A DNA stretch of 64,000 bases from IMG/VR virus record IMGVR_UViG_3300020473_000011, positions 186,001-250,000 of that record; one strand, given 5' to 3'. Below the pieces are notes generated by a model, which saw only the letters and a program-made list of their open reading frames with translations, was not told the DNA's origin and did not search any database. Positions 15,403 through 61,895 of this stretch are shown here, piece by piece (the stretch's first letter is position 1; every line of letters starts with the position of its first letter). The translations under genes were made by a program, and so were the position numbers.

Positions 15403-15759
15403 TTATGTTTTTGGGGTAACCCAAACGAACGCGTTCTTTTTATCGCGCTGGTTCTTCTTTCGGTCAAGCACATCTTGGTAGAAGATTGATTGACGCCACT
15501 TGTTCGCTGAGCGCGTGATCCACATAATGATGTCATGAACTTTGACATTACCACGCGGGGCACGTAGTCCTGTTACCTTAGTCAGGTCTTTTACTGACAA
15601 GTTCCAGAACTCTGCTTCGCGGGGTAGCTGCCCCGCGACTAGACGTTGTGTAAGCTCATCGCGCTCGTTAACATCTTGCGTTGACTCAACTAACTGCTCT
15701 ACAGTCTGGCTAGTGTCGTATTCTTCAAAGCGTGCAAGGATTTGGTCTGCGCGTGTCAT
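15403..15759 (-). CDS. Hypothetical protein with shared N-terminal leader (MTRADQILARFEE)
   Basis: Start moved to ATG 15759 (AAGGTG RBS); basic C-terminus. Confidence 0.75.
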   Translation of the reverse strand: MTRADQILARFEEYDTSQTVEQLVESTQDVNERDELTQRLVAGQLPREAEFWNLSVKDLTKVTGLRAPRGNVKVHDIIMWITRSANKWRQSIFYQDVLDRKKNQRDKKNAFVWVTPKT

Positions 15760-15769
15760 ACGAGTCACC

Positions 15770-16603
15770 TTAAAATTCAAATTTCCAGTTAGCTACTAGG
15801 TTCTTGCGGTCTTTAGCTGGGATTGCATTAACGACCTTCGCTAAGTCAGCATCTAGTGCGACAGGCTCAATGTCAGTAACCATTTTCTTTGTGATTGCAT
15901 CGGTAGCATTTACAGCAACACGAAGGCGCGTAAAGGCTTCGGTGACGCCATCAGAGTTAGCCTGAATCTTCTCTAGTTCCATTAAGGCCACAAGCACCCA
16001 GTCTGGACGTCTACGCTTAATAGCTGTTGCAACACCTGCCACGTTGTGGTCGTTCGCGCCTTCGAAGTAGTCGACTAGTTCGTCAATCGCGACGGGTTCA
16101 TGCTTTCCGATGTCCATTGTATCGGCTAGCGCTTTCGCACCCTTTTTGTAACCGTTGGCTTTGGCCATTGTATGGAGTAAAAGCAGTGCTGCCTCATAGC
16201 TGTCGTCGGCGTCGTGGTCTAGTGCGCCTTCCGCAACATCAACACGAGATTCTACAACATCAATAGCATCACCCGACTGCTTTTCATCGGCGGCTTCGTC
16301 TAAGCCATCCTGTAGGTCTGCGATTTGAGCTTCAATGCCACGTAGGCTCTTAACTGCTTTTTCGAGGTCTTCTAGACTGTCGAAGAATCGGATCTGACCC
16401 ATGGTAGCCATGTTCTTACGCTTAGACCAAACTTCCCAGTCACCCTGTTTATTTTGGTGAATAGTGTATTGGGTCTGACGCACTGATGTCTGGTAGTAGG
16501 TGTGGTTACCTTCGGTAGATACTTCGATTTTAAGAAGTGCTGCTTCGTTTGAAGCTACAAGGGATTCGTCATGACGTGTGATTAATTGTCCAGCTCGGCT
16601 CAT
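15770..16603 (-). CDS. Hypothetical protein with shared N-terminal leader (MSRAGQLITRHDE)
   Basis: 277 aa; two apparent domains joined by an acidic linker. Confidence 0.8.
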   Translation of the reverse strand: MSRAGQLITRHDESLVASNEAALLKIEVSTEGNHTYYQTSVRQTQYTIHQNKQGDWEVWSKRKNMATMGQIRFFDSLEDLEKAVKSLRGIEAQIADLQDGLDEAADEKQSGDAIDVVESRVDVAEGALDHDADDSYEAALLLLHTMAKANGYKKGAKALADTMDIGKHEPVAIDELVDYFEGANDHNVAGVATAIKRRRPDWVLVALMELEKIQANSDGVTEAFTRLRVAVNATDAITKKMVTDIEPVALDADLAKVVNAIPAKDRKNLVANWKFEF

Positions 16604-16691
16604 CTTTGTCTCAGTCTTGGTTATTTTAGAAGCTCACTAGCCTAGCTTCTAAAAGACTAAGCCAGTCCTTTTAATCTTTTTATGCTTATAG

Positions 16692-16768
16692 TGGCGAGGA
16701 TGATGGGACTCGAACCCACGACCTCTTGCGTGACAGGCAAGTATTCTAACCAACTGAACTACATCCCC
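16692..16768 (-). tRNA. tRNA-Asp(GUC)
   Basis: GGGGATG...CTTGC-CTGTCAC-GCAAG, G73, encoded CCA. Confidence 0.95.
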
Positions 16769-17342: not shown

Positions 17343-17347
17343 CAAAG

Positions 17348-17379: not shown

Positions 17380-18075
17380 TTAGCCTTCACCGTAGAAAAG
17401 GTTTGTAACATCATCGGCGTATAGCATTCGGTATGGGATGAACGTCGCTGTTACGTTGGCATATAAAGGGTTTCCTTGTGGTGTGACCTCTTTACTGAAC
17501 TCGGCCACGACGTCTTCAATAAGTAAGCCGTCTGCGCGGAACCAGCGCCCAATTTTGAGAGTAGCCGTGTTCTCAGCTGTATCGTCTTCACCCGCCTTCG
17601 CAATGTAACCCATCGGTGCTCGCATACCTACGCCGACGCCAAAACCCTCGCCAGCATTCCCTAGTGGGTACACGCAGCGTAGCAGCTTACTAACATCACG
17701 TCGAACGTCAATATCGTCTTTATAGGCGACCAACACAAAGTTTATAGGGAACTGTGCAGGTTCGCTCGACGTCCAGCGCCTCACCGTTGAAGCTCGCGAC
17801 GTCGTTGATACCTGACCAACGTTAGTAAGACCCACTGAGTTACCTGCCATGCCTAGTGTGTTCGCAACGCCATCAAGCATGCTGTTCTCACCAATTGCCT
17901 TACCTTCCCAAGAGGCTGATCCTTGAATAGAGAAGTTCTCTATTGTAAAGCCCGTGATGGTTCCTGTTTGACCAGCGGGCAGGGCTGTTTGAGGTATTAC
18001 GATAGAGACCTTTGCGTGTTCAAACTGACCTGACGCTAGTGCCTCTATATCCATTACTGCATTTTCTGTAGCCAT
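17380..18075 (-). CDS. Tail tube initiator / baseplate-tube junction protein (gp48-like)
   Basis: 231 aa directly after the tape measure; FPINFVLVAY and L.IG.WF...LIEDV...FS...G.P..A.VT.TF tube-fold pattern. Confidence 0.6.
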   Translation of the reverse strand: MATENAVMDIEALASGQFEHAKVSIVIPQTALPAGQTGTITGFTIENFSIQGSASWEGKAIGENSMLDGVANTLGMAGNSVGLTNVGQVSTTSRASTVRRWTSSEPAQFPINFVLVAYKDDIDVRRDVSKLLRCVYPLGNAGEGFGVGVGMRAPMGYIAKAGEDDTAENTATLKIGRWFRADGLLIEDVVAEFSKEVTPQGNPLYANVTATFIPYRMLYADDVTNLFYGEG

Positions 18076-18083: not shown

Positions 18084-21000
18084 CTAATCAAAAAGAATTG
18101 AGTTCATGATTGCAATACCCGTGTCGTCCACATTGAACGAACCAGCATGCCCCGAACTAGATGGACGTGGCGAACTTACTGTTGTGCGGCGCTGGGCTTT
18201 TGGCCTTGACGCCGACACCACATTCGGGTTATTACGATCAGGTCGCTTACCTTGTCCACCTGTAGCTGCACCCGATAGCTGTGCTTGTACAGTTGGCGAC
18301 ATAAGCGTGTCATTCATCAATTTCTCATCGCGCAGTGTTGGTGGCATTTCAACGTGGGCATTAAGCTGGCCACCTGCCGTAGCAACTGTGGCTGCTCCTG
18401 CAAGTGTCCCGCCCATTGCGGTATTACCTTGGCTAAGCAGTGAGCCTATCGCACCTGTACTAAACGCACGGCTTGAAACATTGCTCTTGGACGATGTTGA
18501 CCCACCGATGTTAGTAAGGTTGCTATAACTCGCAAGGTTAGACACCTTCGACACACTTGACCCATCATTACTCAAGCCAAACGTTTTATTTATCACATTC
18601 CGTGCGTTTTGAAGATGTGCATCTAGTTGACTATCACCTGTACTTCTATTCGACAAGTCAGGCGCTCGCCCAACGATAGTTGCTGCCGAAGACAAGCCGC
18701 CTTTTGCAGTGTAACCATCACCCATAAATAGCTGGTCGGCACTACCGCCTTCGGCTAACGATGGGTTAAAGAACGTGCCATCTTTTGATGCGATACTTGA
18801 TGAGCTTGGTTTGCTCTCTGAGCCGAACATGCTCGACCACGCATTATATGCCAGACCCATTGGCGTATAAGACGCTGCCGTACCAATCGCACCACCTACA
18901 CGGCTTAGCAGTGAAGGGGAGTCAGCTGTCTTACCATGTAGGTTAATAGACCCTGTGTTGCCATCGCTAACAAGACTGCTAACGCCTTTGTAAGCTAAGC
19001 CCATCGGCGTGTAAGACACCGCTGTGCTTGCCGCATCTTTTAAGCGGTCAAACATGGATGGTGACTCGCTGACTTTGCCTGACGGTGTTGCAGCTGCTCC
19101 CGTATTACCGTCGCTTACTAGGCTGCTAACGCCTTTGTAAGCTAAGCCCATCGGTGTGTAAGACACAGCGGTGCTTGCCGCGTCTTTTAAGCGGTCGAAC
19201 ATTGATGATGGTTCGCTTGCTTTGCCTGACGGTGTTGCAGCCGCTCCCGTGCTGCCGTCGCTTACAAGGCTACTAACGCCTTTGTAAGCTAAGCCCATCG
19301 GTGTGTACGACACAGCGGTGCTTGCCGCATCTTTTAAGCGGTCAAACATTGATGGCGTCTTTTCTTCCTTGGCACTTAAAGGCACTGACCCCGACGCATC
19401 GCTACTGAATAGACTAGAAGCGCCTGTCGCTGCCATACCAATAGGTGTATACGACATAGCAGTACTTGCTGCGTCAGACATTCTGCTAAGTAATGACGGC
19501 TTTTCATCGTCATCGCTAGCACTCCCTAAGCCCAATAGACTTGAGACTCCTGATGCGGCTAACCCCAAGGGTGTATACGACGCTGCGGTTGATGCGATAC
19601 TCGATGCTTTGCTTAATAATGAACTAGACTCATTGTTTGAGCTTTTGCCAACGCTCGTCGCCAAGCTTTTCGCAGCTTGGCTCGCAATCGCACTAGATGA
19701 ACCTGTTTGTTTATTAACACGGTCTCGTGGCTTAAATAGGTCAAGTTCCTTACTATCGTCTTTCGCAAGACTAAGACCTGTCATTGCCGCAGTACCCGCC
19801 AGTGCACCTGATGTTGCTAAGCTTGGCAAGGCATCGTCTACTAACTCGTCAGCATTTGGCGCTAGTGCATCACTGCTAGTGCCTGCAATCTTGGCAGCGG
19901 CACTCTTAGCCTCTTCCTCATCGTCGTCGCCACCCCATAGACCAAAGGTCATACGGTTCATGAGCGAATTACCGACATCACCAAGCATACTGCCCGCCGA
20001 GTGTATTCCGCGAGAGACTGAGCCTTCATCTAACAAACCAAAAGAAAGCCCAGATACGATGCCACCTAATGCCGACGACATTTTCTGACCTGTTGTGGCC
20101 TCTTGACCTTCTTCTAATCCGAAGTTGCTGCCCGCATTGTTCCATCCATTGAAACCATCGTAAGCCGCCATCAGTGGGGCTAGTAATGGAACCTTACCAA
20201 GCACGCCTTTCGCTAGACTACCAGCGCCTTTTAGTAAACCACTCGCGCCACCTGCGACACTAGCAATGCCACCACCTACACCACCTAATAAGCCGCCAGC
20301 ACCTCCCAGTAGCCCAGCGCCTTTAGACGCAATATTACCTAGGAAGCCTTTACCTTTCGAAAGGGCACCGCCTACGCCGCCAGCACCTCCCAGTAACCCA
20401 GCGCCTTTAGACGCGATATTACCTAGGAAACCTTTCCCTTTCGAAAAGGCACCGCTAACAGCACCGCCTATTCGAGATCCTAGGCCACCTTTACGTCGGC
20501 CAGACCCTCGGCTACGGTCTCTATCTGACCCACCAAAGTCAAGGAAGTCACCCGCCATGTCAAGCAGACCACCGCCTTCACCGCCTGTCGCTAGGTTAAC
20601 CATGCCTGTAGCTGCACCACTAATCGCAGCCTTCGCTGTCGAAGCCATATTACCAAGGGCACTGCGTACGCGACCCCCACGTGTACCTCCACGGCGTCCA
20701 CGGCGACCGCTTTCTATGTCTTGATTGCCTACACGGTCACGTCGTCTGTTCTTTCGACCACCTAGGAAGTCATCAAACAGGTCACCCGCACCAAGTAGGT
20801 CACCGATACCACCGCCGCCACCGAGCAAGCCTCCAAGAAGGCTTTCATCGGGGAGTGCGCCCTCTACACGCTTCAAAGTCTTACGCATATCTTTGATCAG
20901 AATCATTTCCTGATCGATGACATCCATTTCCTCTTTGTTGAGCTTCAAGGTTGAGCCAACTAGCGCCTCGCCATCTTTACCAGCTAAAGGGTTTGTAGCC

Positions 21001-27420: not shown

Positions 27421-27475
27421 CAGTTAGTCTCCACTTTGATTAAGTCAGATAAGTAAAATCGTTGTACAACGATAT

Positions 27476-27912: not shown

Positions 27913-28554
27913 TTAGGCAGGCTCTTTTATGTGAATTTGCACAGCACCACCCGTGAAGATGTTTTTTATGCGAGCAAGACTTTCACCCGTTGAAACGATA
28001 AAGGCACCCCTGACTTTGGCTTGGGCACCGATTGTCTTGTAGTAGCCCTCGTCAATAGAAAGCTGAAAGTCCTCTAGCGACTCCCACTCAACCTTGTACT
28101 CAAGGTAATCGTCGAGTGCAGGTATGTGCAGTTTGAAGCGTTTCTCGTTCTTCACGGCCGAACTGGTTGAATAGAGCATTTCAAACCGTTCTAGCTCTTC
28201 CATCTGTGTTGTCACGTACAAGAAGCGGAAATCAAACTCACCCATGAGTACCTTTAGCTGAGTGTGATCCGTGCCGCTATCATCTTTAGGATGGATGATT
28301 TTTTGACGTGATCGCTTACCAAAGACCTCATTACTTCGCAGTGTACTGCGGTTGAAAAGAAGTAAGGGCAGGGCTGTTGTATCGAAAACCTGCTTTTTAT
28401 CATTCTGTGCACGCAGCGCCTCAAGCCCGTCACGGTAGCTCAGGTTCGGCTGGAATAAAGCCGTTGCATTAGGTAAGTGCTGACCCAATTCTTGTAGCAG
28501 TTGCCAAACAACCATAGAGGGCGTTGAGTAAACGTCTATCTTATCGGCGGCCAT
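27913..28554 (-). CDS. Putative tail completion / terminator protein
   Basis: ATG 28554 with AAGGAG RBS; upstream of the sheath; function inferred from position. Confidence 0.5.
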
Positions 28555-30342: not shown

Positions 30343-31080
30343 ATGAGTGCTGAGATAGAAACAACCGATGATAATGCTGCATCACGTGCAGATAAGATTA
30401 TTAGCCGTGCCTCGTTGGTCGGCTTGTTTAGCAGTAATGAAGCCAAGGTGGTTGCTGGTAACTTCATTAAGACACACGGTGGTGCCTACGATGGTGATTG
30501 GCACCTCGTAAAGTACGTGTACCTTGAGGGCAGTGATAACGTCGTTAACCAAAAGATGATGTCATGTATTGGTATAGGTAAGTCTTACGAGTACCCCATA
30601 TCTATGAGAAAGGCTTCTATTGTGCGTGAGCACGAGTCTGCCCTCCATAAGTTTCATGGCAACCGCACGGTAATTTGGGTGGATGACTTAGGCAACGTAT
30701 TTACGACGCGACCTGAGCTAGGATTAGAAGACGATAAGCCTATCAAGAACGTGTATGTTAAGACACGATACCTCTTGGACAATGGAAGCTTTACGGTTAA
30801 TGACCTGCCGTTCTCTCCCGTGGGCTTCGACTGGCACATCATGGGTAAGGCCGAAAAAGCATATATCATTGGCAGCCTGCCTTATAAAGGGTCGTTACTT
30901 AATGAACTCAACGCTGAGTTCGATGCTGTAATGAAGCTGCGCGAAAAGGCCATGAAAGGTTTATTTAAGCCTAATGAGGTCGAATCGTTCGAGTTTATCG
31001 CCGAGGATGAGTGTGACACGAGTCTTGTAGGTGAGGAACGCTACTTCTTCGAGCTGAATACTTTGCTATTCAGTCAGTAG
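30343..31080 (+). CDS. Hypothetical protein
   Basis: 245-aa ORF; leader-like SRADKII motif near the N-terminus. Confidence 0.75.
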   Translation: MSAEIETTDDNAASRADKIISRASLVGLFSSNEAKVVAGNFIKTHGGAYDGDWHLVKYVYLEGSDNVVNQKMMSCIGIGKSYEYPISMRKASIVREHESALHKFHGNRTVIWVDDLGNVFTTRPELGLEDDKPIKNVYVKTRYLLDNGSFTVNDLPFSPVGFDWHIMGKAEKAYIIGSLPYKGSLLNELNAEFDAVMKLREKAMKGLFKPNEVESFEFIAEDECDTSLVGEERYFFELNTLLFSQ

Positions 31081-31114: not shown

Positions 31115-31855
31115 TTAACCAAGCGCTAGATTTACTTCGCACGTACGGTGGTCGCCCGTACTGATACCGTAAACTATCGTGGCTTCGGTTGCGCTGCGTC
31201 GGTCATAGCTTATGATCGTAGGGTTACCGCCCAAGAGGTGGGCTACCTCGTTCAACACATCTGTAATACGTGCACGGTTATCCTTCGCTGACAAATGACT
31301 ATACTGGCCATTCACCAAAATGTTACGCAATTCTTTTACCGACATATCGTTCACTGACGGCAATTTACGAAGCCGTGGTAGTTCCGCCGCTACATGCGGG
31401 CTAAATACATTGGCGGCACGTACCGTACGAACCACAATGTCGACTTCGCCCACTGTTTCAACACCGTTCCCCTCTCTAGTCATGGCCTTCATAAAGGCTT
31501 CAATACTTGGGTATTTGCTATCGTTTTCTTTGAGGTAATCAAAGACCGCTTCTTCATTACGACCGTTGACGTTTTCAAGTGTGACACGGTCTAGTTTTTT
31601 CCCTTTTTCCATAGCGCCATCAAGCGCTGTAATCGTGACCTCATCGTACATAAAATCCCACTCAAGTAGGAATTTACCGTCGGCCGTGTAAACATCTTCC
31701 GTCGCGGTTCGCTCACCATTTTTAAGCTCAGCCACTTCGCTAAGCTTAGTATAGGGCTTGATTAGAATTGTTGTGCTCTTCATCGGGTCGCGACGTGCTT
31801 CTGTTAACGCGTCATAATTACCCTGACATTCATGAAGTCTCTTAAATGCACTCAT
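31115..31855 (-). CDS. Paralogue family A, member 5 (unknown function)
   Basis: FSP...LPRLRKLP...NGQY motif shared with four neighbours. Confidence 0.8.
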   Translation of the reverse strand: MSAFKRLHECQGNYDALTEARRDPMKSTTILIKPYTKLSEVAELKNGERTATEDVYTADGKFLLEWDFMYDEVTITALDGAMEKGKKLDRVTLENVNGRNEEAVFDYLKENDSKYPSIEAFMKAMTREGNGVETVGEVDIVVRTVRAANVFSPHVAAELPRLRKLPSVNDMSVKELRNILVNGQYSHLSAKDNRARITDVLNEVAHLLGGNPTIISYDRRSATEATIVYGISTGDHRTCEVNLALG

Positions 31856-31871
31856 TGATTTGTTCCTTCTG

Positions 31872-32570
31872 TTATCTTAGGCCGAGGTCTACTTGCAGGC
31901 GGCGTGTGGTGTAGCGTAATAATCCCGCTGTGCGGCTAGACGCCTCAAACTTCATGCGGTCGATAAAACGGCCTTTTTCAAACAGGCTCTCTAACTCACT
32001 TAACACATCGGAGATACGATCCTTTCTGAGATTTGCAAAGTAGCTGAACTGGCCATTGGCAAGTATGCGCATGACGTCTCGATGGCTCCAAGTAGTCGGG
32101 ATCTTTGTTAATCGTGGTAGATTGGCCATGGCCATAGGGCTGAACGTTTTTGATGCCTCGACCTCGTAGACTCTGATTTCAAAGTCATCAAAGTTCTCGT
32201 CTTTCACGCGTTCAATAAAGTCATCGAGTGTTCCAAATTCTGCATCGAGGTCAGCGATAGCCGCTGCCATGTCGTCACCCTCATACTCCACTAAGATGTC
32301 CCGTAGCCTCTTATCAGCGTCAGGGTCATCGTACAGCTCTGTCACATAGAGTGATTCTGAATGCCAGTTTACGCGGTAATTACCATCTTCGGAGTAGATG
32401 TCGACACCGTCGTCGTAGTCTTTAAGTGCCATAAGGTCAGTTAAGGTCTCGAATTTCTCGAAACGTAGTGCCGTTGGCTGTTTTAGTAGGTCGAAGCGCT
32501 CATCTAGGCTTCTGTGTGCCATGGCTTCATAGCGCGCGTGGCATTCGTGTAATTCATTAAATGCTGTCAT
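31872..32570 (-). CDS. Paralogue family A, member 4
   Basis: FSP...LPRLTKIP...NGQF. Confidence 0.8.
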   Translation of the reverse strand: MTAFNELHECHARYEAMAHRSLDERFDLLKQPTALRFEKFETLTDLMALKDYDDGVDIYSEDGNYRVNWHSESLYVTELYDDPDADKRLRDILVEYEGDDMAAAIADLDAEFGTLDDFIERVKDENFDDFEIRVYEVEASKTFSPMAMANLPRLTKIPTTWSHRDVMRILANGQFSYFANLRKDRISDVLSELESLFEKGRFIDRMKFEASSRTAGLLRYTTRRLQVDLGLR

Positions 32571-32578
32571 GACTACCC

Positions 32579-33310
32579 CTAACCTAGCCCTAGGTTTACT
32601 TCACAGATACGGCGTCTATTGTGCTGGTTATAGTACTCAACCATCGCGCGTGTGGTGTCTTTGTTGTCTGCCATGATGATAGAGCCATCACCTTGCACAA
32701 GACCCTGTACCTCTGCTAAGAAGTCGGTAACGCGCTTTTGATTGCCTGTCGCCAGTGACTTAAATTGGCCGTTTGCAATCACGCGAGCAAGTATATCGAC
32801 GCTCCAACGGTTAGGGAGCCGCGCCACGCGCTTTAGCTTTGAAGCAGTGACAGGGTTGAAGATGTTCTTACCTTTTTGGATGCGTACAGCAAGGTCAAAA
32901 TCGTCAATACGCGCGTCATCCGTAAGCGAGTTCATGAACGCTTCAATAGTTCCATGTTCCTCGGCCATACGACCCAAATAGATGATAATAGAGTCAAGGC
33001 TCTCGTAGCCGTTTTGGTCAAGCTCAACGTACTTAACCGATTTACCTGCCTGCATTGCATCTGTAATGTCTGTGATTGCGAGACCCCATGGATCCCACTT
33101 CACCATGTACTTACCATCAGCACTGTAGACATTAAAGTTGTAATTTTTGAATTTAAGTAGGTCTTCAACACGCTTGAAGTCTTCAATGTGGATGTTTGTT
33201 TTGCTCTTCATTAAAGCGAGGCGACGTTCGTTAAGCTCTGCGCTTTCATCAAAGTCCAAGCCCGTGATGAAGTCTTCTGTGCTCTCTAGTAGGGTAGCAA
33301 TTACGGTCAT
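32579..33310 (-). CDS. Paralogue family A, member 3
   Basis: ESAELNERR; FNP...LKRVARLP...IANGQF. Confidence 0.8.
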   Translation of the reverse strand: MTVIATLLESTEDFITGLDFDESAELNERRLALMKSKTNIHIEDFKRVEDLLKFKNYNFNVYSADGKYMVKWDPWGLAITDITDAMQAGKSVKYVELDQNGYESLDSIIIYLGRMAEEHGTIEAFMNSLTDDARIDDFDLAVRIQKGKNIFNPVTASKLKRVARLPNRWSVDILARVIANGQFKSLATGNQKRVTDFLAEVQGLVQGDGSIIMADNKDTTRAMVEYYNQHNRRRICEVNLGLG

Positions 33311-33377
33311 TGTATTCTCACGCTCAAAAGGAAAGATTAGGGCTGCCTTATTTGCAGCCCTATACGGTTACTTGGTC

Positions 33378-34157
33378 TTAATTTTGTAGGTTAACGATAC
33401 ACGTGCGTGAGTCGTTTGAGTGTGCACGGTAACGTACACGAACTTCATGCGAGTCTTCGATTTCTTCGTGATAGCGGCTAACTTCAACATCTTTATTCAC
33501 GATGTCTTTAAGCTCGCCTAGCGGGCTAAGACGCGCATTTCGAAGGTCTTCACGGTCTGTCGGCTCGTCGTAGCCCATGTAGAAGTTCTGCTTTAGAACC
33601 GAGAACTGGCCATTAGCGATGACCTTAGCTAACGCGTCTAACGTCCACTTATTAGGAAGCTTTGTAAGGCGCTTTAACTTAGCAGCTGCAAATGGGCTAA
33701 ATGTACTTTTCGCCTTGTCTTCAACTACTGTAATAGTTACTTGGTCAACGTCAGCACGCTCTGTTGTTGCGTCCATGAACTTCTCAATGGTGCCATGCTC
33801 TTCTTCGATGGCCACCAAGAAATTATGGATAGCTGCTGCACCACCTTGCCATGAGTCAAGCGTCACGGTCTTGCACGTCTTGCCTACGCGCATTGCGTTT
33901 TTAATTTCAGTGATGCTGATCTGCATACCTGAACCACGGTAAATTTTAATGCTGAACTTCTCGTCTTTTGTGAAGTAGTCATAGCCCGATGTTTGGTTGA
34001 TGAAATCCGTTGGCTTAGTCCAGTTTTCGAACTTCATGCTGTGCGGTAGGTTCTCTTTCAGTAGATTGAATCGACGCTCGTAAAGCTCTGCTGATTCGCA
34101 GAAATCGTCTGTCATTACTGTGTCTAGTGCTTCTAAAGCATTATTAATACGTGTCAT
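33378..34157 (-). CDS. Paralogue family A, member 2
   Basis: DFCESAELYERR; FSP...LKRLTKLP...IANGQFSVLKQ. Confidence 0.8.
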   Translation of the reverse strand: MTRINNALEALDTVMTDDFCESAELYERRFNLLKENLPHSMKFENWTKPTDFINQTSGYDYFTKDEKFSIKIYRGSGMQISITEIKNAMRVGKTCKTVTLDSWQGGAAAIHNFLVAIEEEHGTIEKFMDATTERADVDQVTITVVEDKAKSTFSPFAAAKLKRLTKLPNKWTLDALAKVIANGQFSVLKQNFYMGYDEPTDREDLRNARLSPLGELKDIVNKDVEVSRYHEEIEDSHEVRVRYRAHSNDSRTCIVNLQN

Positions 34158-34216
34158 TGCAATACCCTTAAAATGGAAAAGAGGGTTAGCCCCTCTTATA
34201 ATTTTGAAAAAATGGA

Positions 34217-34996
34217 TTAACGGCCACCAGCCATGTTAAACACCATGCTACGTGAATCGTTTGAGTGCGCGCCGTAGTTGATCACAACACGGCCATCATC
34301 AAGCTCTTTGGTGTAGTCGACTTTCAGGCGCTTCTCTGCAAACCCTTTGATTTCTTCCATCGGGTCAAGGCGCATGTCCGTCTTGTTCGGATCGTTCGTC
34401 GGCTCGTCGTAGCCCATGTAGTAATCTTGCTTTAGAACAGAGAACTGGCCGTTAGCAATAGCCTTCATCATTGCATCTGCATTCCAACGCTTAGGAAGCT
34501 TAACAAGACGCTTTAGTTTTGCTGCGTTAAATGGGTTAAAGACTTCTTTAGACTTCTGCTCGTAGACATGAATATCAACGCGGCCGCTCTCGGTCTCGAC
34601 GCTGCTTGTTTCAATGTGGTTTACGAAGTCTTCTAATGAACGGTATTCACCACTTGTCGCCAGCTTGTGAAGGTATTCTGATGTAGGCTCATAGCTGCGA
34701 GGAACCGCTGATAGTGAGATTTTCTTACAGGTTTTACCTGCTTTCATACCGTGTTCGATGTCCATGATTTCGATTGAACCCATGTACGCGTGAATACGAT
34801 GCTTACCGTCTTTTGTGTAGATAGTTTGACCGACGCTGATGTCATCAATCTCAGTCAATTCTACGTCTTTGATAATAAGCTTTGAGCTTTGCTTTAGAAG
34901 GTCAAAACGGCGTTCATTTAGTTCTGCTGATTCGCAGAAATCATGAGCTTCTAACTGTTCGGTGACAGCTAGAACCTGTGCGATTCTTGTGGTCAT
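34217..34996 (-). CDS. Paralogue family A, member 1
   Basis: DFCESAELNERR; FNP...LKRLVKLP...IANGQFSVLKQ. Confidence 0.8.
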   Translation of the reverse strand: MTTRIAQVLAVTEQLEAHDFCESAELNERRFDLLKQSSKLIIKDVELTEIDDISVGQTIYTKDGKHRIHAYMGSIEIMDIEHGMKAGKTCKKISLSAVPRSYEPTSEYLHKLATSGEYRSLEDFVNHIETSSVETESGRVDIHVYEQKSKEVFNPFNAAKLKRLVKLPKRWNADAMMKAIANGQFSVLKQDYYMGYDEPTNDPNKTDMRLDPMEEIKGFAEKRLKVDYTKELDDGRVVINYGAHSNDSRSMVFNMAGGR

Positions 34997-35075
34997 ATCT
35001 CAGTCCCAATTGTTTAAGTTTATGACGGTAGGAGTCCCAGCCCGTCGGCTAAACTCATTGTACAACGATGCACCT

Positions 35076-35418: not shown

Positions 35419-35955
35419 ATGACGACCCCTTCTCGCGCAAGCGCCGTACTAGCAAAGTACGAAGGCATGAAAGCCCCTAAGAAAATTGAAACAATCACGA
35501 ACAAAAACGGCGACGAGGTTATTCTCGTTAAAGCGGGTGAGTGGGATTACCACCGCAAAGCTCCAAATGCTGACAACTCTCCAATTAAGCTTGTTTCTAT
35601 GGTTGGTGGCCGTAACGGTGCAGACTATGAAATCGTTTACCGTGACCATTCGTCTCAGCTGTTCAAGTTTGAGGAAGGTCTTACCGTGGACGAAGCACTG
35701 TCAGACCGCGACTTTGCTATCCGTGAGGTGGCTATCGAGACACCGTCTAAGAGTTTCATGGATATTCCTAACGGTGATGATGTTGCCGATGAGTTGCTTA
35801 AAATTGATGGCGTGAGCGACGTTCAGCACTATGCGTCGTTTGTTGTGACATGCAGCCCTGACGGTGTTAGTGACCGTAACGTTATTCGTGACTTGCAACG
35901 CATCCGCGCTGAAATCTTCCATGTACTAAAAGCACATGACGCGCTTGAGTCGTAA
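35419..35955 (+). CDS. Hypothetical protein with leader-like N-terminus (MTTPSRASAVLAKYE)
   Basis: 178 aa; GAGG RBS. Confidence 0.75.
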   Translation: MTTPSRASAVLAKYEGMKAPKKIETITNKNGDEVILVKAGEWDYHRKAPNADNSPIKLVSMVGGRNGADYEIVYRDHSSQLFKFEEGLTVDEALSDRDFAIREVAIETPSKSFMDIPNGDDVADELLKIDGVSDVQHYASFVVTCSPDGVSDRNVIRDLQRIRAEIFHVLKAHDALES

Positions 35956-36863: not shown

Positions 36864-37172
36864 CTAAATAAGGTTGCCCAAGTCGTCGACCATGTCGACA
36901 AAAGCTTCTAGCGGCTCTTCTGAGCGGTCTACAAAGGCTTTAAGATAAGCGTGATGCTTCTCTAGGCGCTCAACCTCATCTTTCGTCAGTTCTTGCTGGT
37001 TGTTTAGGTGATTACCTACACGGTCAAGCTCAGCTTTTACATCACGCATTAGGTTCGACACCTCACGGTAATGCTTAAAGTGTTTGCGTTGGATGTCTTT
37101 TAGCTCATCCTTGCCAATGTTTGTTTGTACTGTGATTTTTGCTTCGTTTAATAGGCCAGCTGCGCGTGACAT
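36864..37172 (-). CDS. Coiled-coil hypothetical protein with leader (MSRAAGLLNE)
   Basis: ATG 37172 with GAGG RBS. Confidence 0.7.
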   Translation of the reverse strand: MSRAAGLLNEAKITVQTNIGKDELKDIQRKHFKHYREVSNLMRDVKAELDRVGNHLNNQQELTKDEVERLEKHHAYLKAFVDRSEEPLEAFVDMVDDLGNLI

Positions 37173-40391: not shown

Positions 40392-40392
40392 C

Positions 40393-55374: not shown

Positions 55375-55388
55375 TGTCTCACCTCAAC

Positions 55389-57305
55389 TTAAATTTGGTT
55401 ATCTTTAATGGTACCTAGACGACCACCGTACCAACGCATTAGCATACGCATGCCTGTGTTGTACTTACCCGTCGAAGGTAGACCTTTATAAAGACGCGTC
55501 GTGCTTTCCCACTCACCGCCGTTTGCTTCACACGAAGCTTGGTCGGCATGGCCTGTCACTGAACACACGCCTTCGTCGTACATAGCAAACTCAGAAAGTG
55601 CACCATTACTGATAACGTCCGCTGAGGTGTAGCCAATTAAGTCGGCTTCTTCTAGGTACAGGTAGCGCTGCGTTGTTAAGCCTGACGGTACCGTGATTAC
55701 GTACTCGTAATCTTCTGATACAGCAACTTGCTCAAACGTATTCAGCACCGCATTTGAATCTGGCGCGTCTTCACCTGCGTTCAGCTCTTCACTTGGACGG
55801 TGGATGTCCGATTCACGTACCACGAAGTACATCGACTTCTGGAATTTCTCGTGATAAACACCATACATACAGAAAAGTGGGCAGAATGACTTATTCTGGT
55901 CAACGAGTGGTGCACCTGTGTCCTTATCAACTAGACGTTGGATATTCAGCCAGCTAAAGCGGTGACCTTCATTCGTTTCGTATTGGTCAACAGCCTGATC
56001 CCATACTGCTAGAACAATACCGTGGTCAGACACAGTTAATGCGTAAGACATCGGAACGTTTAGCGCGCCTTCCCGTGGATCACGTGCTTCACCATCGGTA
56101 TCAAATGAGTTTTGCGCCATAGGGATCAACTCATAACGGCTGTTGTCATAAACTTCAACACCGATGTTAGCTGTATCATCAATCGTCGTTAGATCCGTGA
56201 TGGCGTGCTCTGTTAGCGTCCATACAGCATCACGCGCAGAGTCGTTAGCGAATTTAACGCGCCAATCGAAGCTAAAGGCTGTGCCCGCATTCTTAACATC
56301 AATGCGCCAACCTTTTAGCTCTGAGTAGCTACCCTTCACAGTGAAGGCCACCTGCTGTGCTAGACCGTTTTCGTCACGTTCAGTACCTACTATAGCATCG
56401 GCGTCGATTGACGGTGGTAGGTCGCCCACTACTTTATAAGTAATGTAGCGCTGACCATCTAGGTCTGCTAGGGTCTGGCTACCGTACTCTTTAAAGTAAA
56501 GCGTACACTTTCTTGGCTCGTATACAGGTTTCTTTAAGAGGTGGCCATAATCCGCGTCAGAAGGTGGCGTACGTTGTGAGTAACGACCTGATTCAGGGAA
56601 AGTCGCATTTAAGTCAACTTCCGATGCGTTCGTCATTTCGAACCATTCGATGTCAAGCTCGTACGTCACGCGACCCGATGTATCAAGACCCGCGACAGGT
56701 TCGATACGACGGCTGCCCCATACTTCTTGTGGTAGGCCACCACCTGATAACGGCTTTAAGTACCATTTAAGATTACCGTATGGGTCAGTTGATTGAACTT
56801 GAGTAACACGCGTATGATAAACCGCACGGTTAATAAAGCCATTTTCTTTATAGGCTTCATCAGTCATACGTAGACCGACAAAACCTAGCGTGCCCATCGT
56901 TGAGACTTGGTCAGCAAGATATTCTGTGTTCGGTGGAATATACGGAATTGCTGGTGCTTTTTTCTTGCCCCAGTCAATTTGCAGTGGTGTGGTTACGTTA
57001 ATGTGACCCATACCATGGCCAATGCTATGTTGTGTATCAAAGCGGATAACCCAAGGTTGCTTCGCTTCAACACCATCCACACAAGCGTCGATATGCGGTG
57101 TAGCCTGAATAATGATCACGTCATTCGCAGGGCTGTTTGGATTTGTAAAGTCTAAGTCACTAATATCGGTAGGATAAGTGATCTCAAATGCGTTGTTATC
57201 TGCGCCATCGTAGAACTCTGTCAGGTCTTTTACAACAGACGTGAATAGCTCTCTTGGCGTCGCAAAACCGCCACGTGTGACGGAATACGGCTCAAATGCT
57301 GCCAT
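55389..57305 (-). CDS. Paralogue family B member (638 aa, with large insertion)
   Basis: SWLNIQRLVD / FVVRESDI / GLTTQRY / GYTSADVI. Confidence 0.75.
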   Translation of the reverse strand: MAAFEPYSVTRGGFATPRELFTSVVKDLTEFYDGADNNAFEITYPTDISDLDFTNPNSPANDVIIIQATPHIDACVDGVEAKQPWVIRFDTQHSIGHGMGHINVTTPLQIDWGKKKAPAIPYIPPNTEYLADQVSTMGTLGFVGLRMTDEAYKENGFINRAVYHTRVTQVQSTDPYGNLKWYLKPLSGGGLPQEVWGSRRIEPVAGLDTSGRVTYELDIEWFEMTNASEVDLNATFPESGRYSQRTPPSDADYGHLLKKPVYEPRKCTLYFKEYGSQTLADLDGQRYITYKVVGDLPPSIDADAIVGTERDENGLAQQVAFTVKGSYSELKGWRIDVKNAGTAFSFDWRVKFANDSARDAVWTLTEHAITDLTTIDDTANIGVEVYDNSRYELIPMAQNSFDTDGEARDPREGALNVPMSYALTVSDHGIVLAVWDQAVDQYETNEGHRFSWLNIQRLVDKDTGAPLVDQNKSFCPLFCMYGVYHEKFQKSMYFVVRESDIHRPSEELNAGEDAPDSNAVLNTFEQVAVSEDYEYVITVPSGLTTQRYLYLEEADLIGYTSADVISNGALSEFAMYDEGVCSVTGHADQASCEANGGEWESTTRLYKGLPSTGKYNTGMRMLMRWYGGRLGTIKDNQI

Positions 57306-57493
57306 TGCTCATTTCCTCGTTACTTTAGTCTCAGCACCATTGATACGGCGATACTGCAATCTCAGGTGTAGTTATGATTGTACAACGGATGTGCAGGCGT
57401 TGTACAACGGAGACTATAAAAAACTTACAAGAAGCAACCTAGGGAAAAACTGCACACTAGGCCACTTCGTCAATTAATACCTTAAAACGTTCT

Positions 57494-58840
57494 TTAGTTT
57501 TGAGGCGGTGCGTCAGCGTCGATCTCAGTCAGCATTAGAACCGTCATATTCGTGTTGTACGAGTTATTCGGTGTTAACGCTGTGTACTTACGATAGCGCG
57601 CTTGGTTCTCAAGTACCTTACCGTCGGCATCTTTCGCACCTTCGTTGTAAACATTTACACGAATAGTAAGCTGTGGCGCGATAACGTCACTACTTGTATA
57701 CGCGATCATGTCAAGGTCATGCTGATAGCGGAAGCGCTTAGTGTTTAAGCGGTTAGGGTACAAGATAACGTACTTTGCACCCGCCAAAATAAAGCTACCT
57801 TGGTTGGTGGTCTCTGAGCTAGCTCGGAACTCAACACGCGTCTGCTGTTGCACTTCGTTTAACCACGCATTCGAGTCACGCGTATTACGAGTGGCATCTT
57901 CTGGGTAAGTTGGTTTAAGTACGTCTTTTTCGCGCACAGTAAATTTCTGTACGATACCCGATAGCGGACGTAACGACACAGGTGTTGCCATACCGATTGG
58001 CACTTGGCCATTCATATCGTAGGTGTACGTCGTGCGGTCGTCAGTAAAGCCATACGTATCATAGATGTGTTTGTTGTAGATACCGTACATACAGAACACA
58101 GGGTTACGACTGCCTAGTGGATCAGGGTCTTGTAGGGCGTTACCTGTCTTTTGGTCAACAGGACGCTGCACACAAACCCAAGATTGCGTAGGTGAGTCAC
58201 CCGCTGATTGGTCGTCAGACTCAATCCAATAAGCGAACACAAAGCCACGGTTTGATACTGATAAACGGAAGCTCATTGGGTAAGCTCGTAGCATTCCGTT
58301 GAACTCACGCACGTCGATGAAGTTCAACGTTTGGATATTGAAGCCATGCGCAGGGATCGGGTCGTTCTTGATTGAGTTCACTGCTGATGACGCGCCCATC
58401 ACAACCACATCGCGGTAGTTGTGTGGTACTGTATGCGGTGATTCACCTACGTGGCCACACACATAGCCGCGAAGGTTAGGGATAGCCTCATCATAGTCAT
58501 CACCTAATTGAAGTGGGGTTGCCACTTGGATCTGACAGGTGTACTGGCTATCGGCCGTCACACGAATACGCCAAGGTTCTTCATCGTGAAGCATGTTAAC
58601 TGCATCAGTCGTTTCAAGCACGGCTTCGATGTTTTGTGGATTAGCTGGATCGAATGTGATTGGCGTACGTGTGATTAACGTAAAGCCATTCGCAATCATG
58701 AGTTGCAGCCAATCCGAGACCATTTCACGTACGTCGGTAAAACCGTCACGCGTCACAGTCGTTACAAATTGCGTATCACCACTTGTTAGTGGTGCTGCTA
58801 GGGTTGACGTGTAAACGTCACCGTTGATGTTTAGTGCCAT
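57494..58840 (-). CDS. Paralogue family B member (448 aa)
   Basis: SWVCVQRPVD / FTVREKDV / RLNTKRFR / AYTSSDVI. Confidence 0.75.
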   Translation of the reverse strand: MALNINGDVYTSTLAAPLTSGDTQFVTTVTRDGFTDVREMVSDWLQLMIANGFTLITRTPITFDPANPQNIEAVLETTDAVNMLHDEEPWRIRVTADSQYTCQIQVATPLQLGDDYDEAIPNLRGYVCGHVGESPHTVPHNYRDVVVMGASSAVNSIKNDPIPAHGFNIQTLNFIDVREFNGMLRAYPMSFRLSVSNRGFVFAYWIESDDQSAGDSPTQSWVCVQRPVDQKTGNALQDPDPLGSRNPVFCMYGIYNKHIYDTYGFTDDRTTYTYDMNGQVPIGMATPVSLRPLSGIVQKFTVREKDVLKPTYPEDATRNTRDSNAWLNEVQQQTRVEFRASSETTNQGSFILAGAKYVILYPNRLNTKRFRYQHDLDMIAYTSSDVIAPQLTIRVNVYNEGAKDADGKVLENQARYRKYTALTPNNSYNTNMTVLMLTEIDADAPPQN

Positions 58841-58854
58841 TAGTCAGCCCCTTC

Positions 58855-60195
58855 TTAATTTCCGCCCGCAGGAATGATGCCCGACACGCCAATGTTGTCT
58901 TGCGTCATAATCGCGTTGTTATACCAGCGCATTAAGATGCGTAAGCCCGTATTGTACTCACCCGTTGCACGTAAGCCTTTGTAGCGCTTCTTCGTACCGT
59001 CTTCGTACATAGATAGCTCGGCGATGCCGTCTTGTGAAATGATGTCTGCTGAGCAGTAGCCCATCAAATCCATTTCCTCTAAGTACATGTAACGTTGCGT
59101 GTTCAAACCAGACGGGATAGTTACAACGTACTCGTAGTTCTCCGTCACGCTGATCTGTTCAAGCGGGTTGATTAGGGCAACACTATCTCGCGTGTTGATT
59201 GTCGCGTCTAAGTCTTCACTTGGACGATGCACGTCTGATTCACGCACTACGAAGTAGCGTGTCTCATTCAGTGTTTGGTTTTGAATGCCGTACATACAAA
59301 CAAGCGGCGCGTGGCTCTCTGCTTGGTTGATTAGTGGTGCACCTGAGTCTTTGTCGACTAGACGTTGTGCTGCGAACCAGCTGTGACGACAACCTGTATG
59401 GTCGTACTGGTCGGTTGCTTCTTCCCAGATAGCTAACATAATACCGTGGTCTGATACAGTTAATGCGTAAGACATTGGAATGTTAGGCGTACCCGCAACG
59501 GCAACCTGTGCTGTATCAGGGAACTTGTCTTCGAACTCACGCTTTGCATCATATAGTGGACGACGGCAGAAAAAGCCTTTGTCTTCAATTTCTAGACGTA
59601 GCTGGTCGTTAGGGTCACACCACGAAACTTGCTTGTCGATAACGGGAATACGTCGACCTAAGAAACCCAGTGTACCTTCAACAACAGGGTCGTCATTCTT
59701 GCCGCCTTTGTTCGGTGGCGTGTAGTCATAGAGCTGCCAGTCACCTTGTGCAGGTTTAAATAACTGTAACGGCGTCGATACGTTAATGTGAAGGTTACCA
59801 ATCTCTGGTGCCTTATCATTACGGTCTTCACGACGGTTATTATGACTCGGGTGACATTGCTTACCTACACCTGAATCAAAGCGAATGATCCATGGTTGCG
59901 GTACGACTGATACACCGTGAGTCGCGCGCTCAGGGTCTGCACCTGCTAGGTGGTCTACGAAGCCAGTAGCTTCGATAACGAACACCGATGAATCAAACGA
60001 CAATGGGTCGCTCAGATCAGGGTTGTCCGATGGGTATAAAAGTTTGAAAGCATTCTCTGATGCCGTAGGGTCATCAGGGTGCTCATAATAATCTGTTAAA
60101 TCACGGACAACCGACGTAACCAGCGCTTTAAGCGTAGTGAAACCACCACGTTCAATGCTGTACGGTTGGAAATCCGCTCTCATTTCAAATGCCAT
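58855..60195 (-). CDS. Paralogue family B member (446 aa)
   Basis: SWFAAQRLVD / FVVRESDV / GLNTQRY / GYCSADII. Confidence 0.75.
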   Translation of the reverse strand: MAFEMRADFQPYSIERGGFTTLKALVTSVVRDLTDYYEHPDDPTASENAFKLLYPSDNPDLSDPLSFDSSVFVIEATGFVDHLAGADPERATHGVSVVPQPWIIRFDSGVGKQCHPSHNNRREDRNDKAPEIGNLHINVSTPLQLFKPAQGDWQLYDYTPPNKGGKNDDPVVEGTLGFLGRRIPVIDKQVSWCDPNDQLRLEIEDKGFFCRRPLYDAKREFEDKFPDTAQVAVAGTPNIPMSYALTVSDHGIMLAIWEEATDQYDHTGCRHSWFAAQRLVDKDSGAPLINQAESHAPLVCMYGIQNQTLNETRYFVVRESDVHRPSEDLDATINTRDSVALINPLEQISVTENYEYVVTIPSGLNTQRYMYLEEMDLMGYCSADIISQDGIAELSMYEDGTKKRYKGLRATGEYNTGLRILMRWYNNAIMTQDNIGVSGIIPAGGN

Positions 60196-60333
60196 AAGTT
60201 GTTAACTCCGTCACATCGGCAGCCATTGCTGCGATTAAAAGCCCAGTTACATGTCCGCGACGAGCGCGGTCTAGCACCATTGTACAATGAATGTGCAGAG
60301 TATTACAGTTTCATTGTACAACCATTGATGCCG

Positions 60334-61230
60334 TTATGCTGTGCGAAACATCACACTGATCCCCGCGTTGTCTGCCTCAGTACTAACCATACTGTGGTAG
60401 ATGCGCTGGGAGTTGAAAACTTCCATGTTCAAATTGGCGTTAGCCGATACGAGGTCAGTATTAGCAAAGCCAATAATGTCGAATACACCCTCGTAGCTAA
60501 AGCGCTCCGTAGAGAAATTGTTCGGAAACTGGATTATGTAATCACGGTTCTCCGCAATCTCCTTCAACTTAACAGTGTGCATGACACTGTTTCGGTTGTA
60601 GACGTAATCAATTGCGGTAGTGGCTGGGGCAGGGACGGGTATATCACTCTCCCGAACCAGCAATTGCTTTATGTCAGCTGTAAAACGGTTAAACGTACCA
60701 CTCAATGCCAGTACAGGGTTGTGTACCGTTGGGATAACAATACCTGTTTCCCAATCGACAGGTTTTTGTACGCAAAGCCAACTCAGCTGACGTTCGGGGC
60801 TATCCACCACGGCATGCTCCCATATCGCGATAGCAAACCCATGGCTGTCAGCCGTGAATAGAAGAGAGAAGGGGCGGTTATACTTGCCGTGGGTACCGAG
60901 TCGGTCTCGACGGAACCAGTACCCCAACTCATTCGGCGTGTCTGAGGTATTTAGACTTCCGACAACCCGTGCGTATAAGTCACCCGTCGTGCTTTCTACC
61001 TGCATTGGCGTCGCAATGTTCAAGCGTAAGCGCTGTTCGTCACTCGATAGCTCGAAGCGAACTACCCACTCTTGGTCGTACGAGTTTACGTCCAAGGCGA
61101 TTCGAGGCTTCATAAGCAAGACACGACCGTCTTGCTTCTCTATGATCTCAAAATGGTAGTTGGCCTTCTCTTTGAGAGCTTCAAAAACTTCCCTCAAGTC
61201 GACAAGGCCATGTCGGAAAAAGCTAAACAT
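60334..61230 (-). CDS. Paralogue family B member (298 aa)
   Basis: SWLCVQKPVD / LLVRESDI / NFSTERF. Confidence 0.75.
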   Translation of the reverse strand: MFSFFRHGLVDLREVFEALKEKANYHFEIIEKQDGRVLLMKPRIALDVNSYDQEWVVRFELSSDEQRLRLNIATPMQVESTTGDLYARVVGSLNTSDTPNELGYWFRRDRLGTHGKYNRPFSLLFTADSHGFAIAIWEHAVVDSPERQLSWLCVQKPVDWETGIVIPTVHNPVLALSGTFNRFTADIKQLLVRESDIPVPAPATTAIDYVYNRNSVMHTVKLKEIAENRDYIIQFPNNFSTERFSYEGVFDIIGFANTDLVSANANLNMEVFNSQRIYHSMVSTEADNAGISVMFRTA

Positions 61231-61238
61231 GCTCTGCC

Positions 61239-61895
61239 TTACACGCCTGTGAAACCGTTACCGATTGCGTTCATATCTAGGTTACTCGTGTCGTCTAACG
61301 AAAAGGTACTTGAGACTGTTTCCATGCCATCACTGACCATACCAACTGATTCACTTTCTAGGCCATCAGTGCCACTTGCTTTCTTACCTAGCGACTCAGT
61401 CTGCTTCACGGTTGTGAAACCTGCGTCTTTAAGCCCGCTAAGTTGTACTGTAGCCGTCGCGAAGTCGATGTCGCCTTCACCGTCTTCTTGTGGGAATGAC
61501 TTGCGCTCAAGCTCGGCGGTAACGCTAAAAGCATCGCTTTCGAACTCAGCGTCAACAGCTGGGATCAACGTTTCTTCTGCCCACGTTACAAACTCACCTA
61601 CGAACTCGTCACCGTTAGACTCGCTATTTACTGTCACTTCCCACTCAAGGTCGTCACTGTTTAATTGACGTAGTGACGGTGTCAGTGTTGGCCAGTCCCA
61701 CTTCATCATCGCGTTAAAGCCTTTGATAGTATCAGTTAGAAAGCCCTGAACACGCGATACGGTCTCTGTGCCTGCGTCGGTCAGTGTTAGGTTTTCGAGT
61801 TCTTCGCCAATATTCGATGAACCGCCACCAATACTTGATGAACCACCACCTACAAGGGCTTCATAACGTTCTAGGATTGTATTTGCTCGTGTCAT
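61239..61895 (-). CDS. Acidic hypothetical protein with leader (MTRANTILERYE) and Gly/Ser linker
   Basis: ATG 61895; GGGSSSIGGGSSNIG follows the leader. Confidence 0.75.
   Translation of the reverse strand: MTRANTILERYEALVGGGSSSIGGGSSNIGEELENLTLTDAGTETVSRVQGFLTDTIKGFNAMMKWDWPTLTPSLRQLNSDDLEWEVTVNSESNGDEFVGEFVTWAEETLIPAVDAEFESDAFSVTAELERKSFPQEDGEGDIDFATATVQLSGLKDAGFTTVKQTESLGKKASGTDGLESESVGMVSDGMETVSSTFSLDDTSNLDMNAIGNGFTGV

Follow-up and report, generated by a model that had tools for sequence, protein, structure and literature searches.

A shared N-terminal leader on unrelated proteins of a large uncultured phage is a candidate capsid-targeting propeptide

The window analyzed here is a stretch of 64,000 nucleotides, positions 186,001-250,000 of the IMG/VR contig IMGVR_UViG_3300020473_000011 (281,557 bp). 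It includes a contractile-tail module of a large marine phage. A number of otherwise unrelated proteins encoded in and around this tail region begin with a similar short leader. We describe the leader, the proteins that carry it and the head machinery of the phage, and consider whether the leader directs its carriers into the phage head.

Results

Leader-bearing proteins

All N-termini quoted in the initial annotation of the window were found where it had placed them, including SRADKII at residue 14 of the plus-strand open reading frame (ORF) starting at 30343. The proteins that carry the leader (carriers) are encoded as follows.

15403..15759, minus strand: c118, 118 aa, basic (pI 9.3); leader MTRADQILARFEE, residues 1-13, nt 15759-15721
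15770..16603, minus strand: c277, 277 aa, acidic; leader MSRAGQLITRHDE
30343..31080, plus strand: c245, 245 aa; leader-like SRADKIISRA from residue 14
31115..34996, minus strand: family A, five paralogues (246, 232, 243, 259 and 259 aa)
35419..35955, plus strand: c178, 178 aa; N-terminus MTTPSRASAVLAKYE, with the leader SRASAVLAKYE after MTTP
36864..37172, minus strand: c102, 102 aa, coiled-coil-like; leader MSRAAGLLNE followed by A, with L-N-E at residues 8-10
61239..61895, minus strand: c218, 218 aa, pI 4.05; leader MTRANTILERYE, directly followed by the Gly/Ser linker ALVGGGSSSIGGGSS
63014..63253, minus strand: c79, 79 aa, borderline; MALTFAADSTLARYV resembles RADxxLARF

These genes are placed in the tail module, amid sheath-like genes and in a block inserted between the neck and sheath genes. 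The c277 gene comes after a gp48/PmgG-like gene, within a tRNA cluster. The c218 gene sits amid six sheath-like paralogues. The leader is retained in orthologues. Three c277 orthologues from other metagenomes, about 70% identical, keep MSRAxxxxTRHD[ED]S, and a c118 orthologue on another contig has MSRADEILARFKE.

The strength of the match varies among the carriers. With a position-specific scoring matrix (PSSM) trained on other phages only, c178 scores 14.4. In c245, an acidic extension of 13 residues precedes a displaced and weaker copy of the leader, with a leader PSSM score of 14.4 at residue 14. The match in c79 is weak (long-leader PSSM 5.7, control rate 0.27%). For c102, an in-frame ATG is present upstream at 37220. 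The shorter start at 37172 is probably the correct one, favored by its ribosome-binding site, a GAGG located 10 nt before it.

The five family-A paralogues have the N-termini and the L-x-E-[RA]-R motif reported in the initial annotation. Their N-termini range from the clear leaders MTTRIAQVLAV, MTRINNALEAL and MTVIATLLES down to the degenerate M[ST]AF..LHEC. In alignments, the conserved L-x-E-[RA]-R motif is located near residues 20-30.

Additional carriers are found elsewhere in this phage. Outside the window, a 186-aa protein starts with MTTRIAQVLESL, a 126-aa protein (c126) starts with MNNAVSRALHALD, and a Cys-rich protein of 52-57 aa contains MTRIATVLADLD. The contig with the head genes encodes c147 (MSTESRAGKLLANVDE), c97 (MSKSRAELILEK) and c276 (MSRAQNILDTYNALYE). 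About 12 carriers are found in the window and at least six more in another 100 kb, or at least 18 in 165 kb. The initial annotation was conservative in putting the number of leader-bearing proteins at 10 or more. About 45 kb of this phage's metabolic and replication regions showed no carriers. When all carriers, including family A, and a 3108-aa ORF of the window were scanned against Pfam and PHROG, no recognizable domain or informative hit was obtained.

The leader is selected at the protein level

We assembled 156 kb of non-overlapping sequence of the phage, with 199 genes, by walking along public contigs. The pattern [ST]R[AI]..[ILVA][LI] begins within the first 7 residues in 11 of the 199 genes. 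The rate at internal positions (3 matches in 44,285) predicts 0.09 (binomial P~1e-19), so the leader greatly exceeds chance. A strict regular expression run on the six-frame translation of the window gave six matches, five of which are gene starts. The core of the leader is offset by 1-4 residues from the N-terminus in this phage, and by 13 in c245.

Codon usage indicates what is being conserved. The Ser codon of the leader is AGC in one gene and TCA in another. The nine residues MTTRIAQVL are identical in a family-A member and the unrelated 186-aa protein; six of the nine codons differ, all of them synonymously. Selection therefore acts on the protein. Consistent with the earlier claim that unrelated proteins share the leader, an all-against-all BLASTP search of leader-trimmed proteins of this phage (E<=0.05) matched family-A members with each other and found no other relationship.

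A distant family-A homologue in another phage, P0017 (376 aa), starts with MSTVSRAAALIARFEE, a canonical leader. This indicates that the degenerate N-termini of family A belong to the same leader class. P0017 contains about 130 extra residues between the leader and the family-A domain, and an unrelated gene neighboring it starts with MTTRAGSLIARFED. Together, the layout of P0017 and its tagged neighbor indicate that the leader is modular.

Structure predictions were obtained with AlphaFold2 (AF2). In the family-A model, with a predicted local distance difference test score (pLDDT) of 83, the leader is a helix of residues 4-15. pLDDT falls below 50 over residues 15-21, ahead of a confidently predicted globular body. 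The family-A model gave no fold match in the PDB and one match to an unnamed viral protein. In the c118 model, which is of low confidence, residues 3-11 form a helix followed by a loop.

The shared N-terminus is a portable address tag on unrelated proteins. The tag is an amphipathic helix of 12-14 residues, M-[STN]-[KR]-A-x-x-[LI]-[LI]-x-x-(F/Y/L)-[ED]-[ED], usually followed by a flexible stretch. It looks detachable, given the helix and low-confidence linker in the AF2 models, the Gly/Ser linker in c218 and the layout of P0017. In secretion signal peptides, a basic N-terminal region precedes a hydrophobic core of about 10-15 residues. The leader has no such Sec, Tat or lipoprotein signal: its three or four hydrophobic residues are spaced as in an amphipathic helix, and it is rich in Asp, Glu, Arg and Lys.

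Genome and head machinery of the phage

No close relative of this phage was found among deposited phages. Its tail sheath shares 39% identity with the sheath of Rhizobium phage RHph_TM30 and related phages, and its sheath, neck and major capsid protein (MCP) are nearest to the TM30 group of gp23-type phages. One copy of the phage has been binned as an Aestuariibacter sp. metagenome-assembled genome, which is either a hint of the host or a binning error.

Head genes were not met in the roughly 100 kb walked along the genome. A scan with an MCP profile located them on another IMG/VR contig, _000020 (138,059 bp), derived from the same sample. IMG/VR treats the two contigs as separate viral genomes, with a combined length of 281,557 + 138,059 = 419,616 bp. 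Single contigs of 416,263, 419,531 and 419,624 bp from independent assemblies also carry proteins of the window (a complete 419.6-kb contig is, for example, ENA ERZ842402 NODE_284656), and a protein of contig _000020 is also found on four contigs longer than 200 kb. Because the lengths sum up and large contigs are shared, we infer that both contigs belong to one genome of about 419.6 kb, which includes the head module.

The gene order in the head module is portal (625 aa), a 236-aa protein, a 592-aa protease-scaffold, MCP, a DUF7487 protein and c147. The carrier c147 is therefore encoded two genes after the MCP, and c97 and c276 are encoded 10 kb downstream. The N-terminal part of the 592-aa protein is a Peptidase_S77 domain (PF03420, the T4 gp21 family) at 36.1 bits, above the cut-off of 27, and also matches phrog_207. 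Its remainder is a repetitive, acidic, coiled-coil tail resembling a scaffold. The MCP belongs to the Gp23 family (PF07068). Judged by these domains, the head machinery is of the T4 type, with an S77 protease fused to the scaffold and a Gp23-family shell. The analogy with T4 drawn in the initial annotation needed such machinery, and it is present.

The fusion of the prohead protease with a long coiled-coil scaffold, with internal repeats (LGTVE...), is encoded at L083 4465-6243, and the gene recurs at 20 related loci. The C-terminal peptide of the scaffold is conserved in the clade as ESRGxxLMxxFSK, or SRAGSLTETLMKQF in this phage. It may be an element that contacts the capsid or portal.

We considered whether the leader copies the scaffold tail. 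The leader PSSM matches SRAGSLTETLMK, located 48 residues from the C-terminal end of the protease-scaffold, at 13.2 bits (p ~0.03-0.04 for that protein). A PSSM built from six distant scaffold tails failed to retrieve cargo N-termini, and the leader PSSM failed to pick the tail in distant scaffolds. We keep copying of the scaffold tail as a weak hypothesis. The N-terminus of the protease, MSQRDLFVDAFE, is alike in register by eye; it ranks 28 of 199, which is not significant, and was rejected as a leader.

The leader is widespread in related phages

Head-module loci of related phages, with 728 genes, were fetched by MCP similarity alone. The pattern [STN][KR]A..[LIVMF][LIVMC] occurs within the first nine residues in 59 of these genes at 16 loci, compared to 1.5 expected. 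The carriers have a median length of 96 aa, and their genes are intermingled with those for portal, protease, MCP, neck and sheath. Some relatives have 8-12 of them within a head module of 16-18 kb. After trimming, 61 carriers fall into 49 clusters, and none within any one locus are related. The core begins at residue 2 in 46 of the 61 and within seven residues in the rest. The clade logo is M-[SNT]-[KR]-A-[QSK]-[KED]-[LIF]-[LI]-x-x-[LIVF]-x-E. When the 199 N-termini of this phage were ranked with a PSSM built from 46 leaders of other phages only, seven of its carriers were in the top eight.

Large proteins carry the leader as well. A 948-aa protein (L070 2452-5298) and a 331-aa protein (L078 1825-2820) of related phages start with MSRAKSLLNTFNE and MTRAKDILNSLNE. 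Their genes adjoin the portal gene, with ATPase- or terminase-like PHROG matches. In the cultured Vibrio phages 1.031.O._10N.261.46.F8, whose host is an environmental Vibrio lentus, and 150E35-1, a series of small genes lies between neck and sheath. Genes in this series start with MKTAQDILTICES, MKTAEQILSICES, MIKAVELLEICEA and MATTGAKLLEICEA, the best-scoring N-termini of those loci.

The leader was not found in Lu11 (a distantly related cultured jumbo phage), TM30, two Pseudoalteromonas-associated phage contigs or the E. coli phage EP_H11. A degenerate DNA pattern for RAxx[LI][LI]ARFE[DE], searched in IMG/VR and JGI metagenomes, gave an N-terminal match in this phage alone. The remaining hits were internal, GC-rich chance matches.

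A candidate processing site

A gp21-type cut, after Glu with a small residue following it, would leave a sequence trace near the leader. E[AGS] is found in residues 8-32 of 10 of 12 carriers of this phage, compared to 59 of 187 other proteins (p=5e-4). Across the clade, the numbers are 32 of 61 carriers and 194 of 565 others (p=0.004). The DA and AE controls are flat in the same test. Glu is enriched at positions +1, +4 or +5 after the leader core.

A palindrome upstream of many genes

The palindrome TCRTTGTACAAYGA (core TTGTACAA) has 29 copies in the window, nearly all intergenic. It precedes start codons by 25-120 nt, in genes of every class. Examples are at the following positions, and it is also found in L014, L047, L048 and L083.

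27459-27472
35055-35068
37220-37233
37516-37529
60277-60324

Allowing up to one mismatch, TTGTACAAYGA has 41 matches, compared to 3.5 expected. The palindrome is shared with a distant relative and with the two Pseudoalteromonas-associated contigs, and is probably the phage's own promoter or operator. We rejected the core as a late promoter that ties the carriers to structural genes. It is equally dense upstream of the helicase, CCA-adding enzyme, SNase and similar genes (4.5-8 per 10 kb everywhere), and this even density means that it holds no timing information. The T4 late promoter TATAAATA was looked for and not found.

Other genes of the window

The contractile-tail module is on the minus strand and also has hub, gp5-like and gp25-like genes. 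Its other features, and those of the surrounding regions, are as follows.

12756-16768, minus strand: eight tRNA genes (Ser x2, Leu, Glu, Thr, Met, Ala, Asp), flanking c277 and c118
13219-13902, plus strand: 227-aa protein with a precomputed Aca2_YdiL hit (anti-CRISPR-associated regulator-like helix-turn-helix)
14252-14617, minus strand: 121-aa protein with a signal-like N-terminus, DUF3718
17380-18075, minus strand: gp48/PmgG-like protein
18084-22988, minus strand: likely tape measure, 1634 aa
24959-25489, minus strand: tube
25543-27420, minus strand: sheath
38316-44523, minus strand: four co-oriented genes (375, 423, 582 and 691 aa) within the structural region
44609-53935, minus strand: 3108-aa ORF, between the sheath-like paralogues and the integrase-containing block
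54154-63007, minus strand: six sheath-like paralogues (406, 638, 448, 446, 298 and 359 aa), phrog_12249 'tail sheath'

The six sheath-like paralogues are additional to the true sheath at 25543-27420. Their nearest cultured homologues are in the jumbo phages Lu11, Erwinia Y3, Alexandra and Dickeya AD1. Possible roles for them are an additional layer of the tail or appendages. The 3108-aa ORF has no clear leader. In the block at 38316-44523, the 423-aa protein matches the Phage_integrase (tyrosine recombinase) family, and the block may be a mobile element inserted into this large, lytic-looking phage. The 227-aa and 121-aa genes sit in the tRNA region amid tail genes. In T4, ipI likewise adjoins a tRNA cluster, possibly by coincidence.

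Homologues of the TM30 neck and head-completion genes are split. A gp288-like gene (27913-28572) adjoins the sheath gene. The gp286- and gp284-like genes are located just right of the window (locus L006 7699-8954), about 35 kb upstream of the gp288-like gene. Most carriers of the window lie in the roughly 35 kb between them, together with family A, the sheath-like paralogues, the 3108-aa ORF and the integrase block. Because these accessory genes separate neck homologues of the TM30 type, they seem to be an expansion inserted inside the module that joins head to tail.

Discussion

We propose that the leader is a propeptide for capsid targeting, similar in action to the capsid-targeting sequence (CTS) of T4, and estimate the probability of this at roughly 0.55. 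The proposal is based on the S77/Gp23 machinery, the positions of the carrier genes, the helix and linker, and the enrichment of Glu followed by a small residue. We infer core docking, cleavage, presence in the virion, ejection and cargo function. During head assembly, the helix would dock the carrier onto the prohead core, built from the S77 protease fused to its coiled-coil scaffold. The cargo would be enclosed once the Gp23-type shell closes. The tag would then probably be cut off by the protease at a Glu-(Ala/Gly/Ser) bond located 9-30 residues into the protein. Once released, the cargo would remain with the DNA and could exit together with it at infection. The initial annotation had further assigned the carriers a role as early anti-defence effectors. 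Since no carrier has a recognizable domain, that role is pure conjecture.

Several observations weigh against capsid targeting. The genes of c277, c118 and c218 are located in tail modules and not in head modules. The (I/L)xE ending that the initial annotation ascribed to the leaders holds for c102 (LNE), c218 (ILE), A243 (LLE) and, as L-x-E-[RA]-R, for family A. It does not hold for other carriers, which have FEE (c118), HDE (c277), KYE (c178) or VDE, and c178 lacks a hydrophobic-x-E near its leader. When the MCP is aligned to T4 gp23, it has L-E-N where T4 has L-T-E; the alignment is ambiguous, so that the cleavage rule of the clade cannot be read from the MCP. The sheath N-terminus MSSAQVILKEV scores 9.0 with the leader PSSM, which indicates that the leader model is somewhat leaky. 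TM30 and the two Pseudoalteromonas contigs are close relatives in their head genes and have no carriers near them, which means that a head of this type does not require the tag. T4 leaders score within background (ipIII -7.5, ipII -9.2, ipI -20.8; 13-84% of background N-termini score as high), and the best T4 N-terminus is that of gp24, at 0.8. The PSSM therefore does not support homology with the T4 CTS, and the likeness to T4 is an analogy. Finally, the analysis covers about 165 kb of the roughly 420 kb genome and, in the relatives, the head-module loci.

The location of carriers in tail modules keeps alive a different docking site. The helix may bind elsewhere in the virion, for instance to the neck, collar, tail lumen, baseplate or an extra sheath-like layer, and recruit accessory, decoration or tail-delivered proteins there. 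We consider this unlikely. c277 and c118 are encoded between the gp48/PmgG-like gene and baseplate hub genes, c218 and c79 within the six sheath-like paralogues, and many carriers of the relatives between neck genes and sheath. A gp284-like neck/head-completion homologue has a leader-like N-terminus in two phages (L067 13689 and L078 16265), as does the sheath. Contractile injection systems are also known to load cargo via N-terminal signals. However, carriers are also encoded directly between the portal and protease genes and right after the MCP. The lumen of a phage tail is filled by the tape measure protein, the sizes of the cargo and its number per genome resemble those of T4 internal proteins, and the enrichment of Glu followed by a small residue fits a prohead protease. 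We know of no protease of this type that acts in tails.

N-terminal amphipathic helices are common recognition elements, and the leader might serve a purpose unrelated to the virion. It could bind a common non-structural partner (a chaperone, degron protease, transcription or replication factor, or host target) or be an oligomerization handle. Two carriers, c52 and c126, are encoded near RNase H and DNA polymerase-like genes, and two on the L014 contig beside a PAPS-reductase-like gene. This explanation appears more doubtful still, because the tag shows a strong concentration in the head-neck-tail modules of 16 independent phages and occurs together with the S77/Gp23 head type, and because it was not seen in the metabolic and replication regions surveyed in this phage.

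That the leader has no shared function, and reflects chance, hidden paralogy of whole proteins, a DNA element (promoter, ribosome-binding site or recombination site) or a bias toward M-S-K-type starts that favor translation, is very improbable, and the statistics effectively refute it. Bacterial and phage proteins often start with M-S-K or M-T-R, and the palindromic core lies upstream of several carriers. However, start-codon context cannot yield the hydrophobic pair and the later Phe/Tyr-Glu, P is ~1e-19 against internal positions, and no gene matches in Lu11, TM30 or the two Pseudoalteromonas contigs. In addition, codons differ synonymously, the trimmed proteins are unrelated, and the palindrome is even over all gene classes and located outside the coding leader.

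The T4 CTS has been treated largely as a speciality of T-even phages, and is the basis of protein-packaging tools. If capsid targeting is correct here, loading the head with diverse small proteins would be a widespread phage strategy. A simple sequence rule could then pick candidate virion-delivered proteins from metagenomes, and the question of what phages inject besides DNA would become testable. The leader would also provide a new short tag to package foreign proteins in phages of hosts other than E. coli. The cargo proteins, lacking known domains, would be a pool of unexplored functions.

Comparison with known systems

Short helical peptides bind the inside of HK97-fold shells in encapsulins, as cargo-loading peptides, and in HK97, as the C-terminal tail of the protease. 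Such peptides suffice to load foreign cargo. A speculative extension of our proposal, which has a modest chance of being correct, is that the leader is a viral counterpart of encapsulin cargo-loading peptides. It would be an ancient cargo-loading code, conserved in the clade, for dozens of fast-evolving small effectors delivered by the virion, would copy the capsid-contact peptide of the scaffold, and would be a transferable packaging tag of 14 residues. Unlike the leader, the encapsulin and HK97 peptides are as a rule found at the C-terminus and attach directly to the shell protein. The sole similar hint in this phage is the weak match to the scaffold tail peptide.

An N-terminal stretch of fewer than 30 residues in DarB of phage P1 sends a foreign protein into the capsid (PMC9024508). 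The cargo of this Dar anti-restriction system is an anti-defence protein delivered with the DNA, and its incorporation depends on other Dar proteins. The P1 signal was defined on one giant protein, and P1 lacks the gp23/S77 head.

In the phiKZ-like giant phages (phiKZ, 201phi2-1 and SPN3US), dozens of head-internal proteins are cut after Glu by a diverged gp21-type protease, and a role in incorporation has been suggested for their propeptides (PMC9026906). In these phages the propeptides vary, are long and follow an (S/A/G)-x-E rule, whereas the carriers described here share a single short leader. The phage is not of the phiKZ type; as described above, its sheath, neck and MCP are nearest to the TM30 group.

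The closest parallel is T4. The internal proteins of T4 have N-terminal propeptides of 10-19 residues that target the prohead core (PMC9026906). Residues 4 and 7 of the CTS serve targeting, residues 8 and 10 serve processing, and the cut is after Glu (PMC9026906). The protease gp21 cleaves behind L/I-x-E, at a bond originally identified as glutamyl-alanyl, and the genes of the internal-protein cargo vary highly between relatives (PMC9026906, PMC3012670). Like the CTS of IPI, IPII, IPIII and the Alt propeptide, the leader is a short N-terminal peptide on unrelated, mostly small proteins, in a phage with the same head type (gp21-family S77 protease, scaffold core and gp23-family shell). It is likewise located at the extreme N-terminus and spans about 10-19 residues. 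The format is also alike: residue 4 is small or hydrophobic, residues 7-8 are a hydrophobic pair, Glu comes 1, 4 or 5 residues later, and a Glu-Ala type junction follows.

The two systems differ in sequence, which here is M-[STN]-[KR]-A-x-x-L-L-x-x-F-E-E in place of the T4 decapeptide. They also differ in scale. T4 has four carriers, compared to at least 18 in 165 kb here and up to 9-12 per head module of 16-18 kb in relatives. In addition, the protease is fused to the scaffold in this phage, which is known from metagenomes. The leader is best filed as probable capsid targeting of the known T4 type, with a new sequence variant that an uncultured clade places on unusually many and diverse small proteins.

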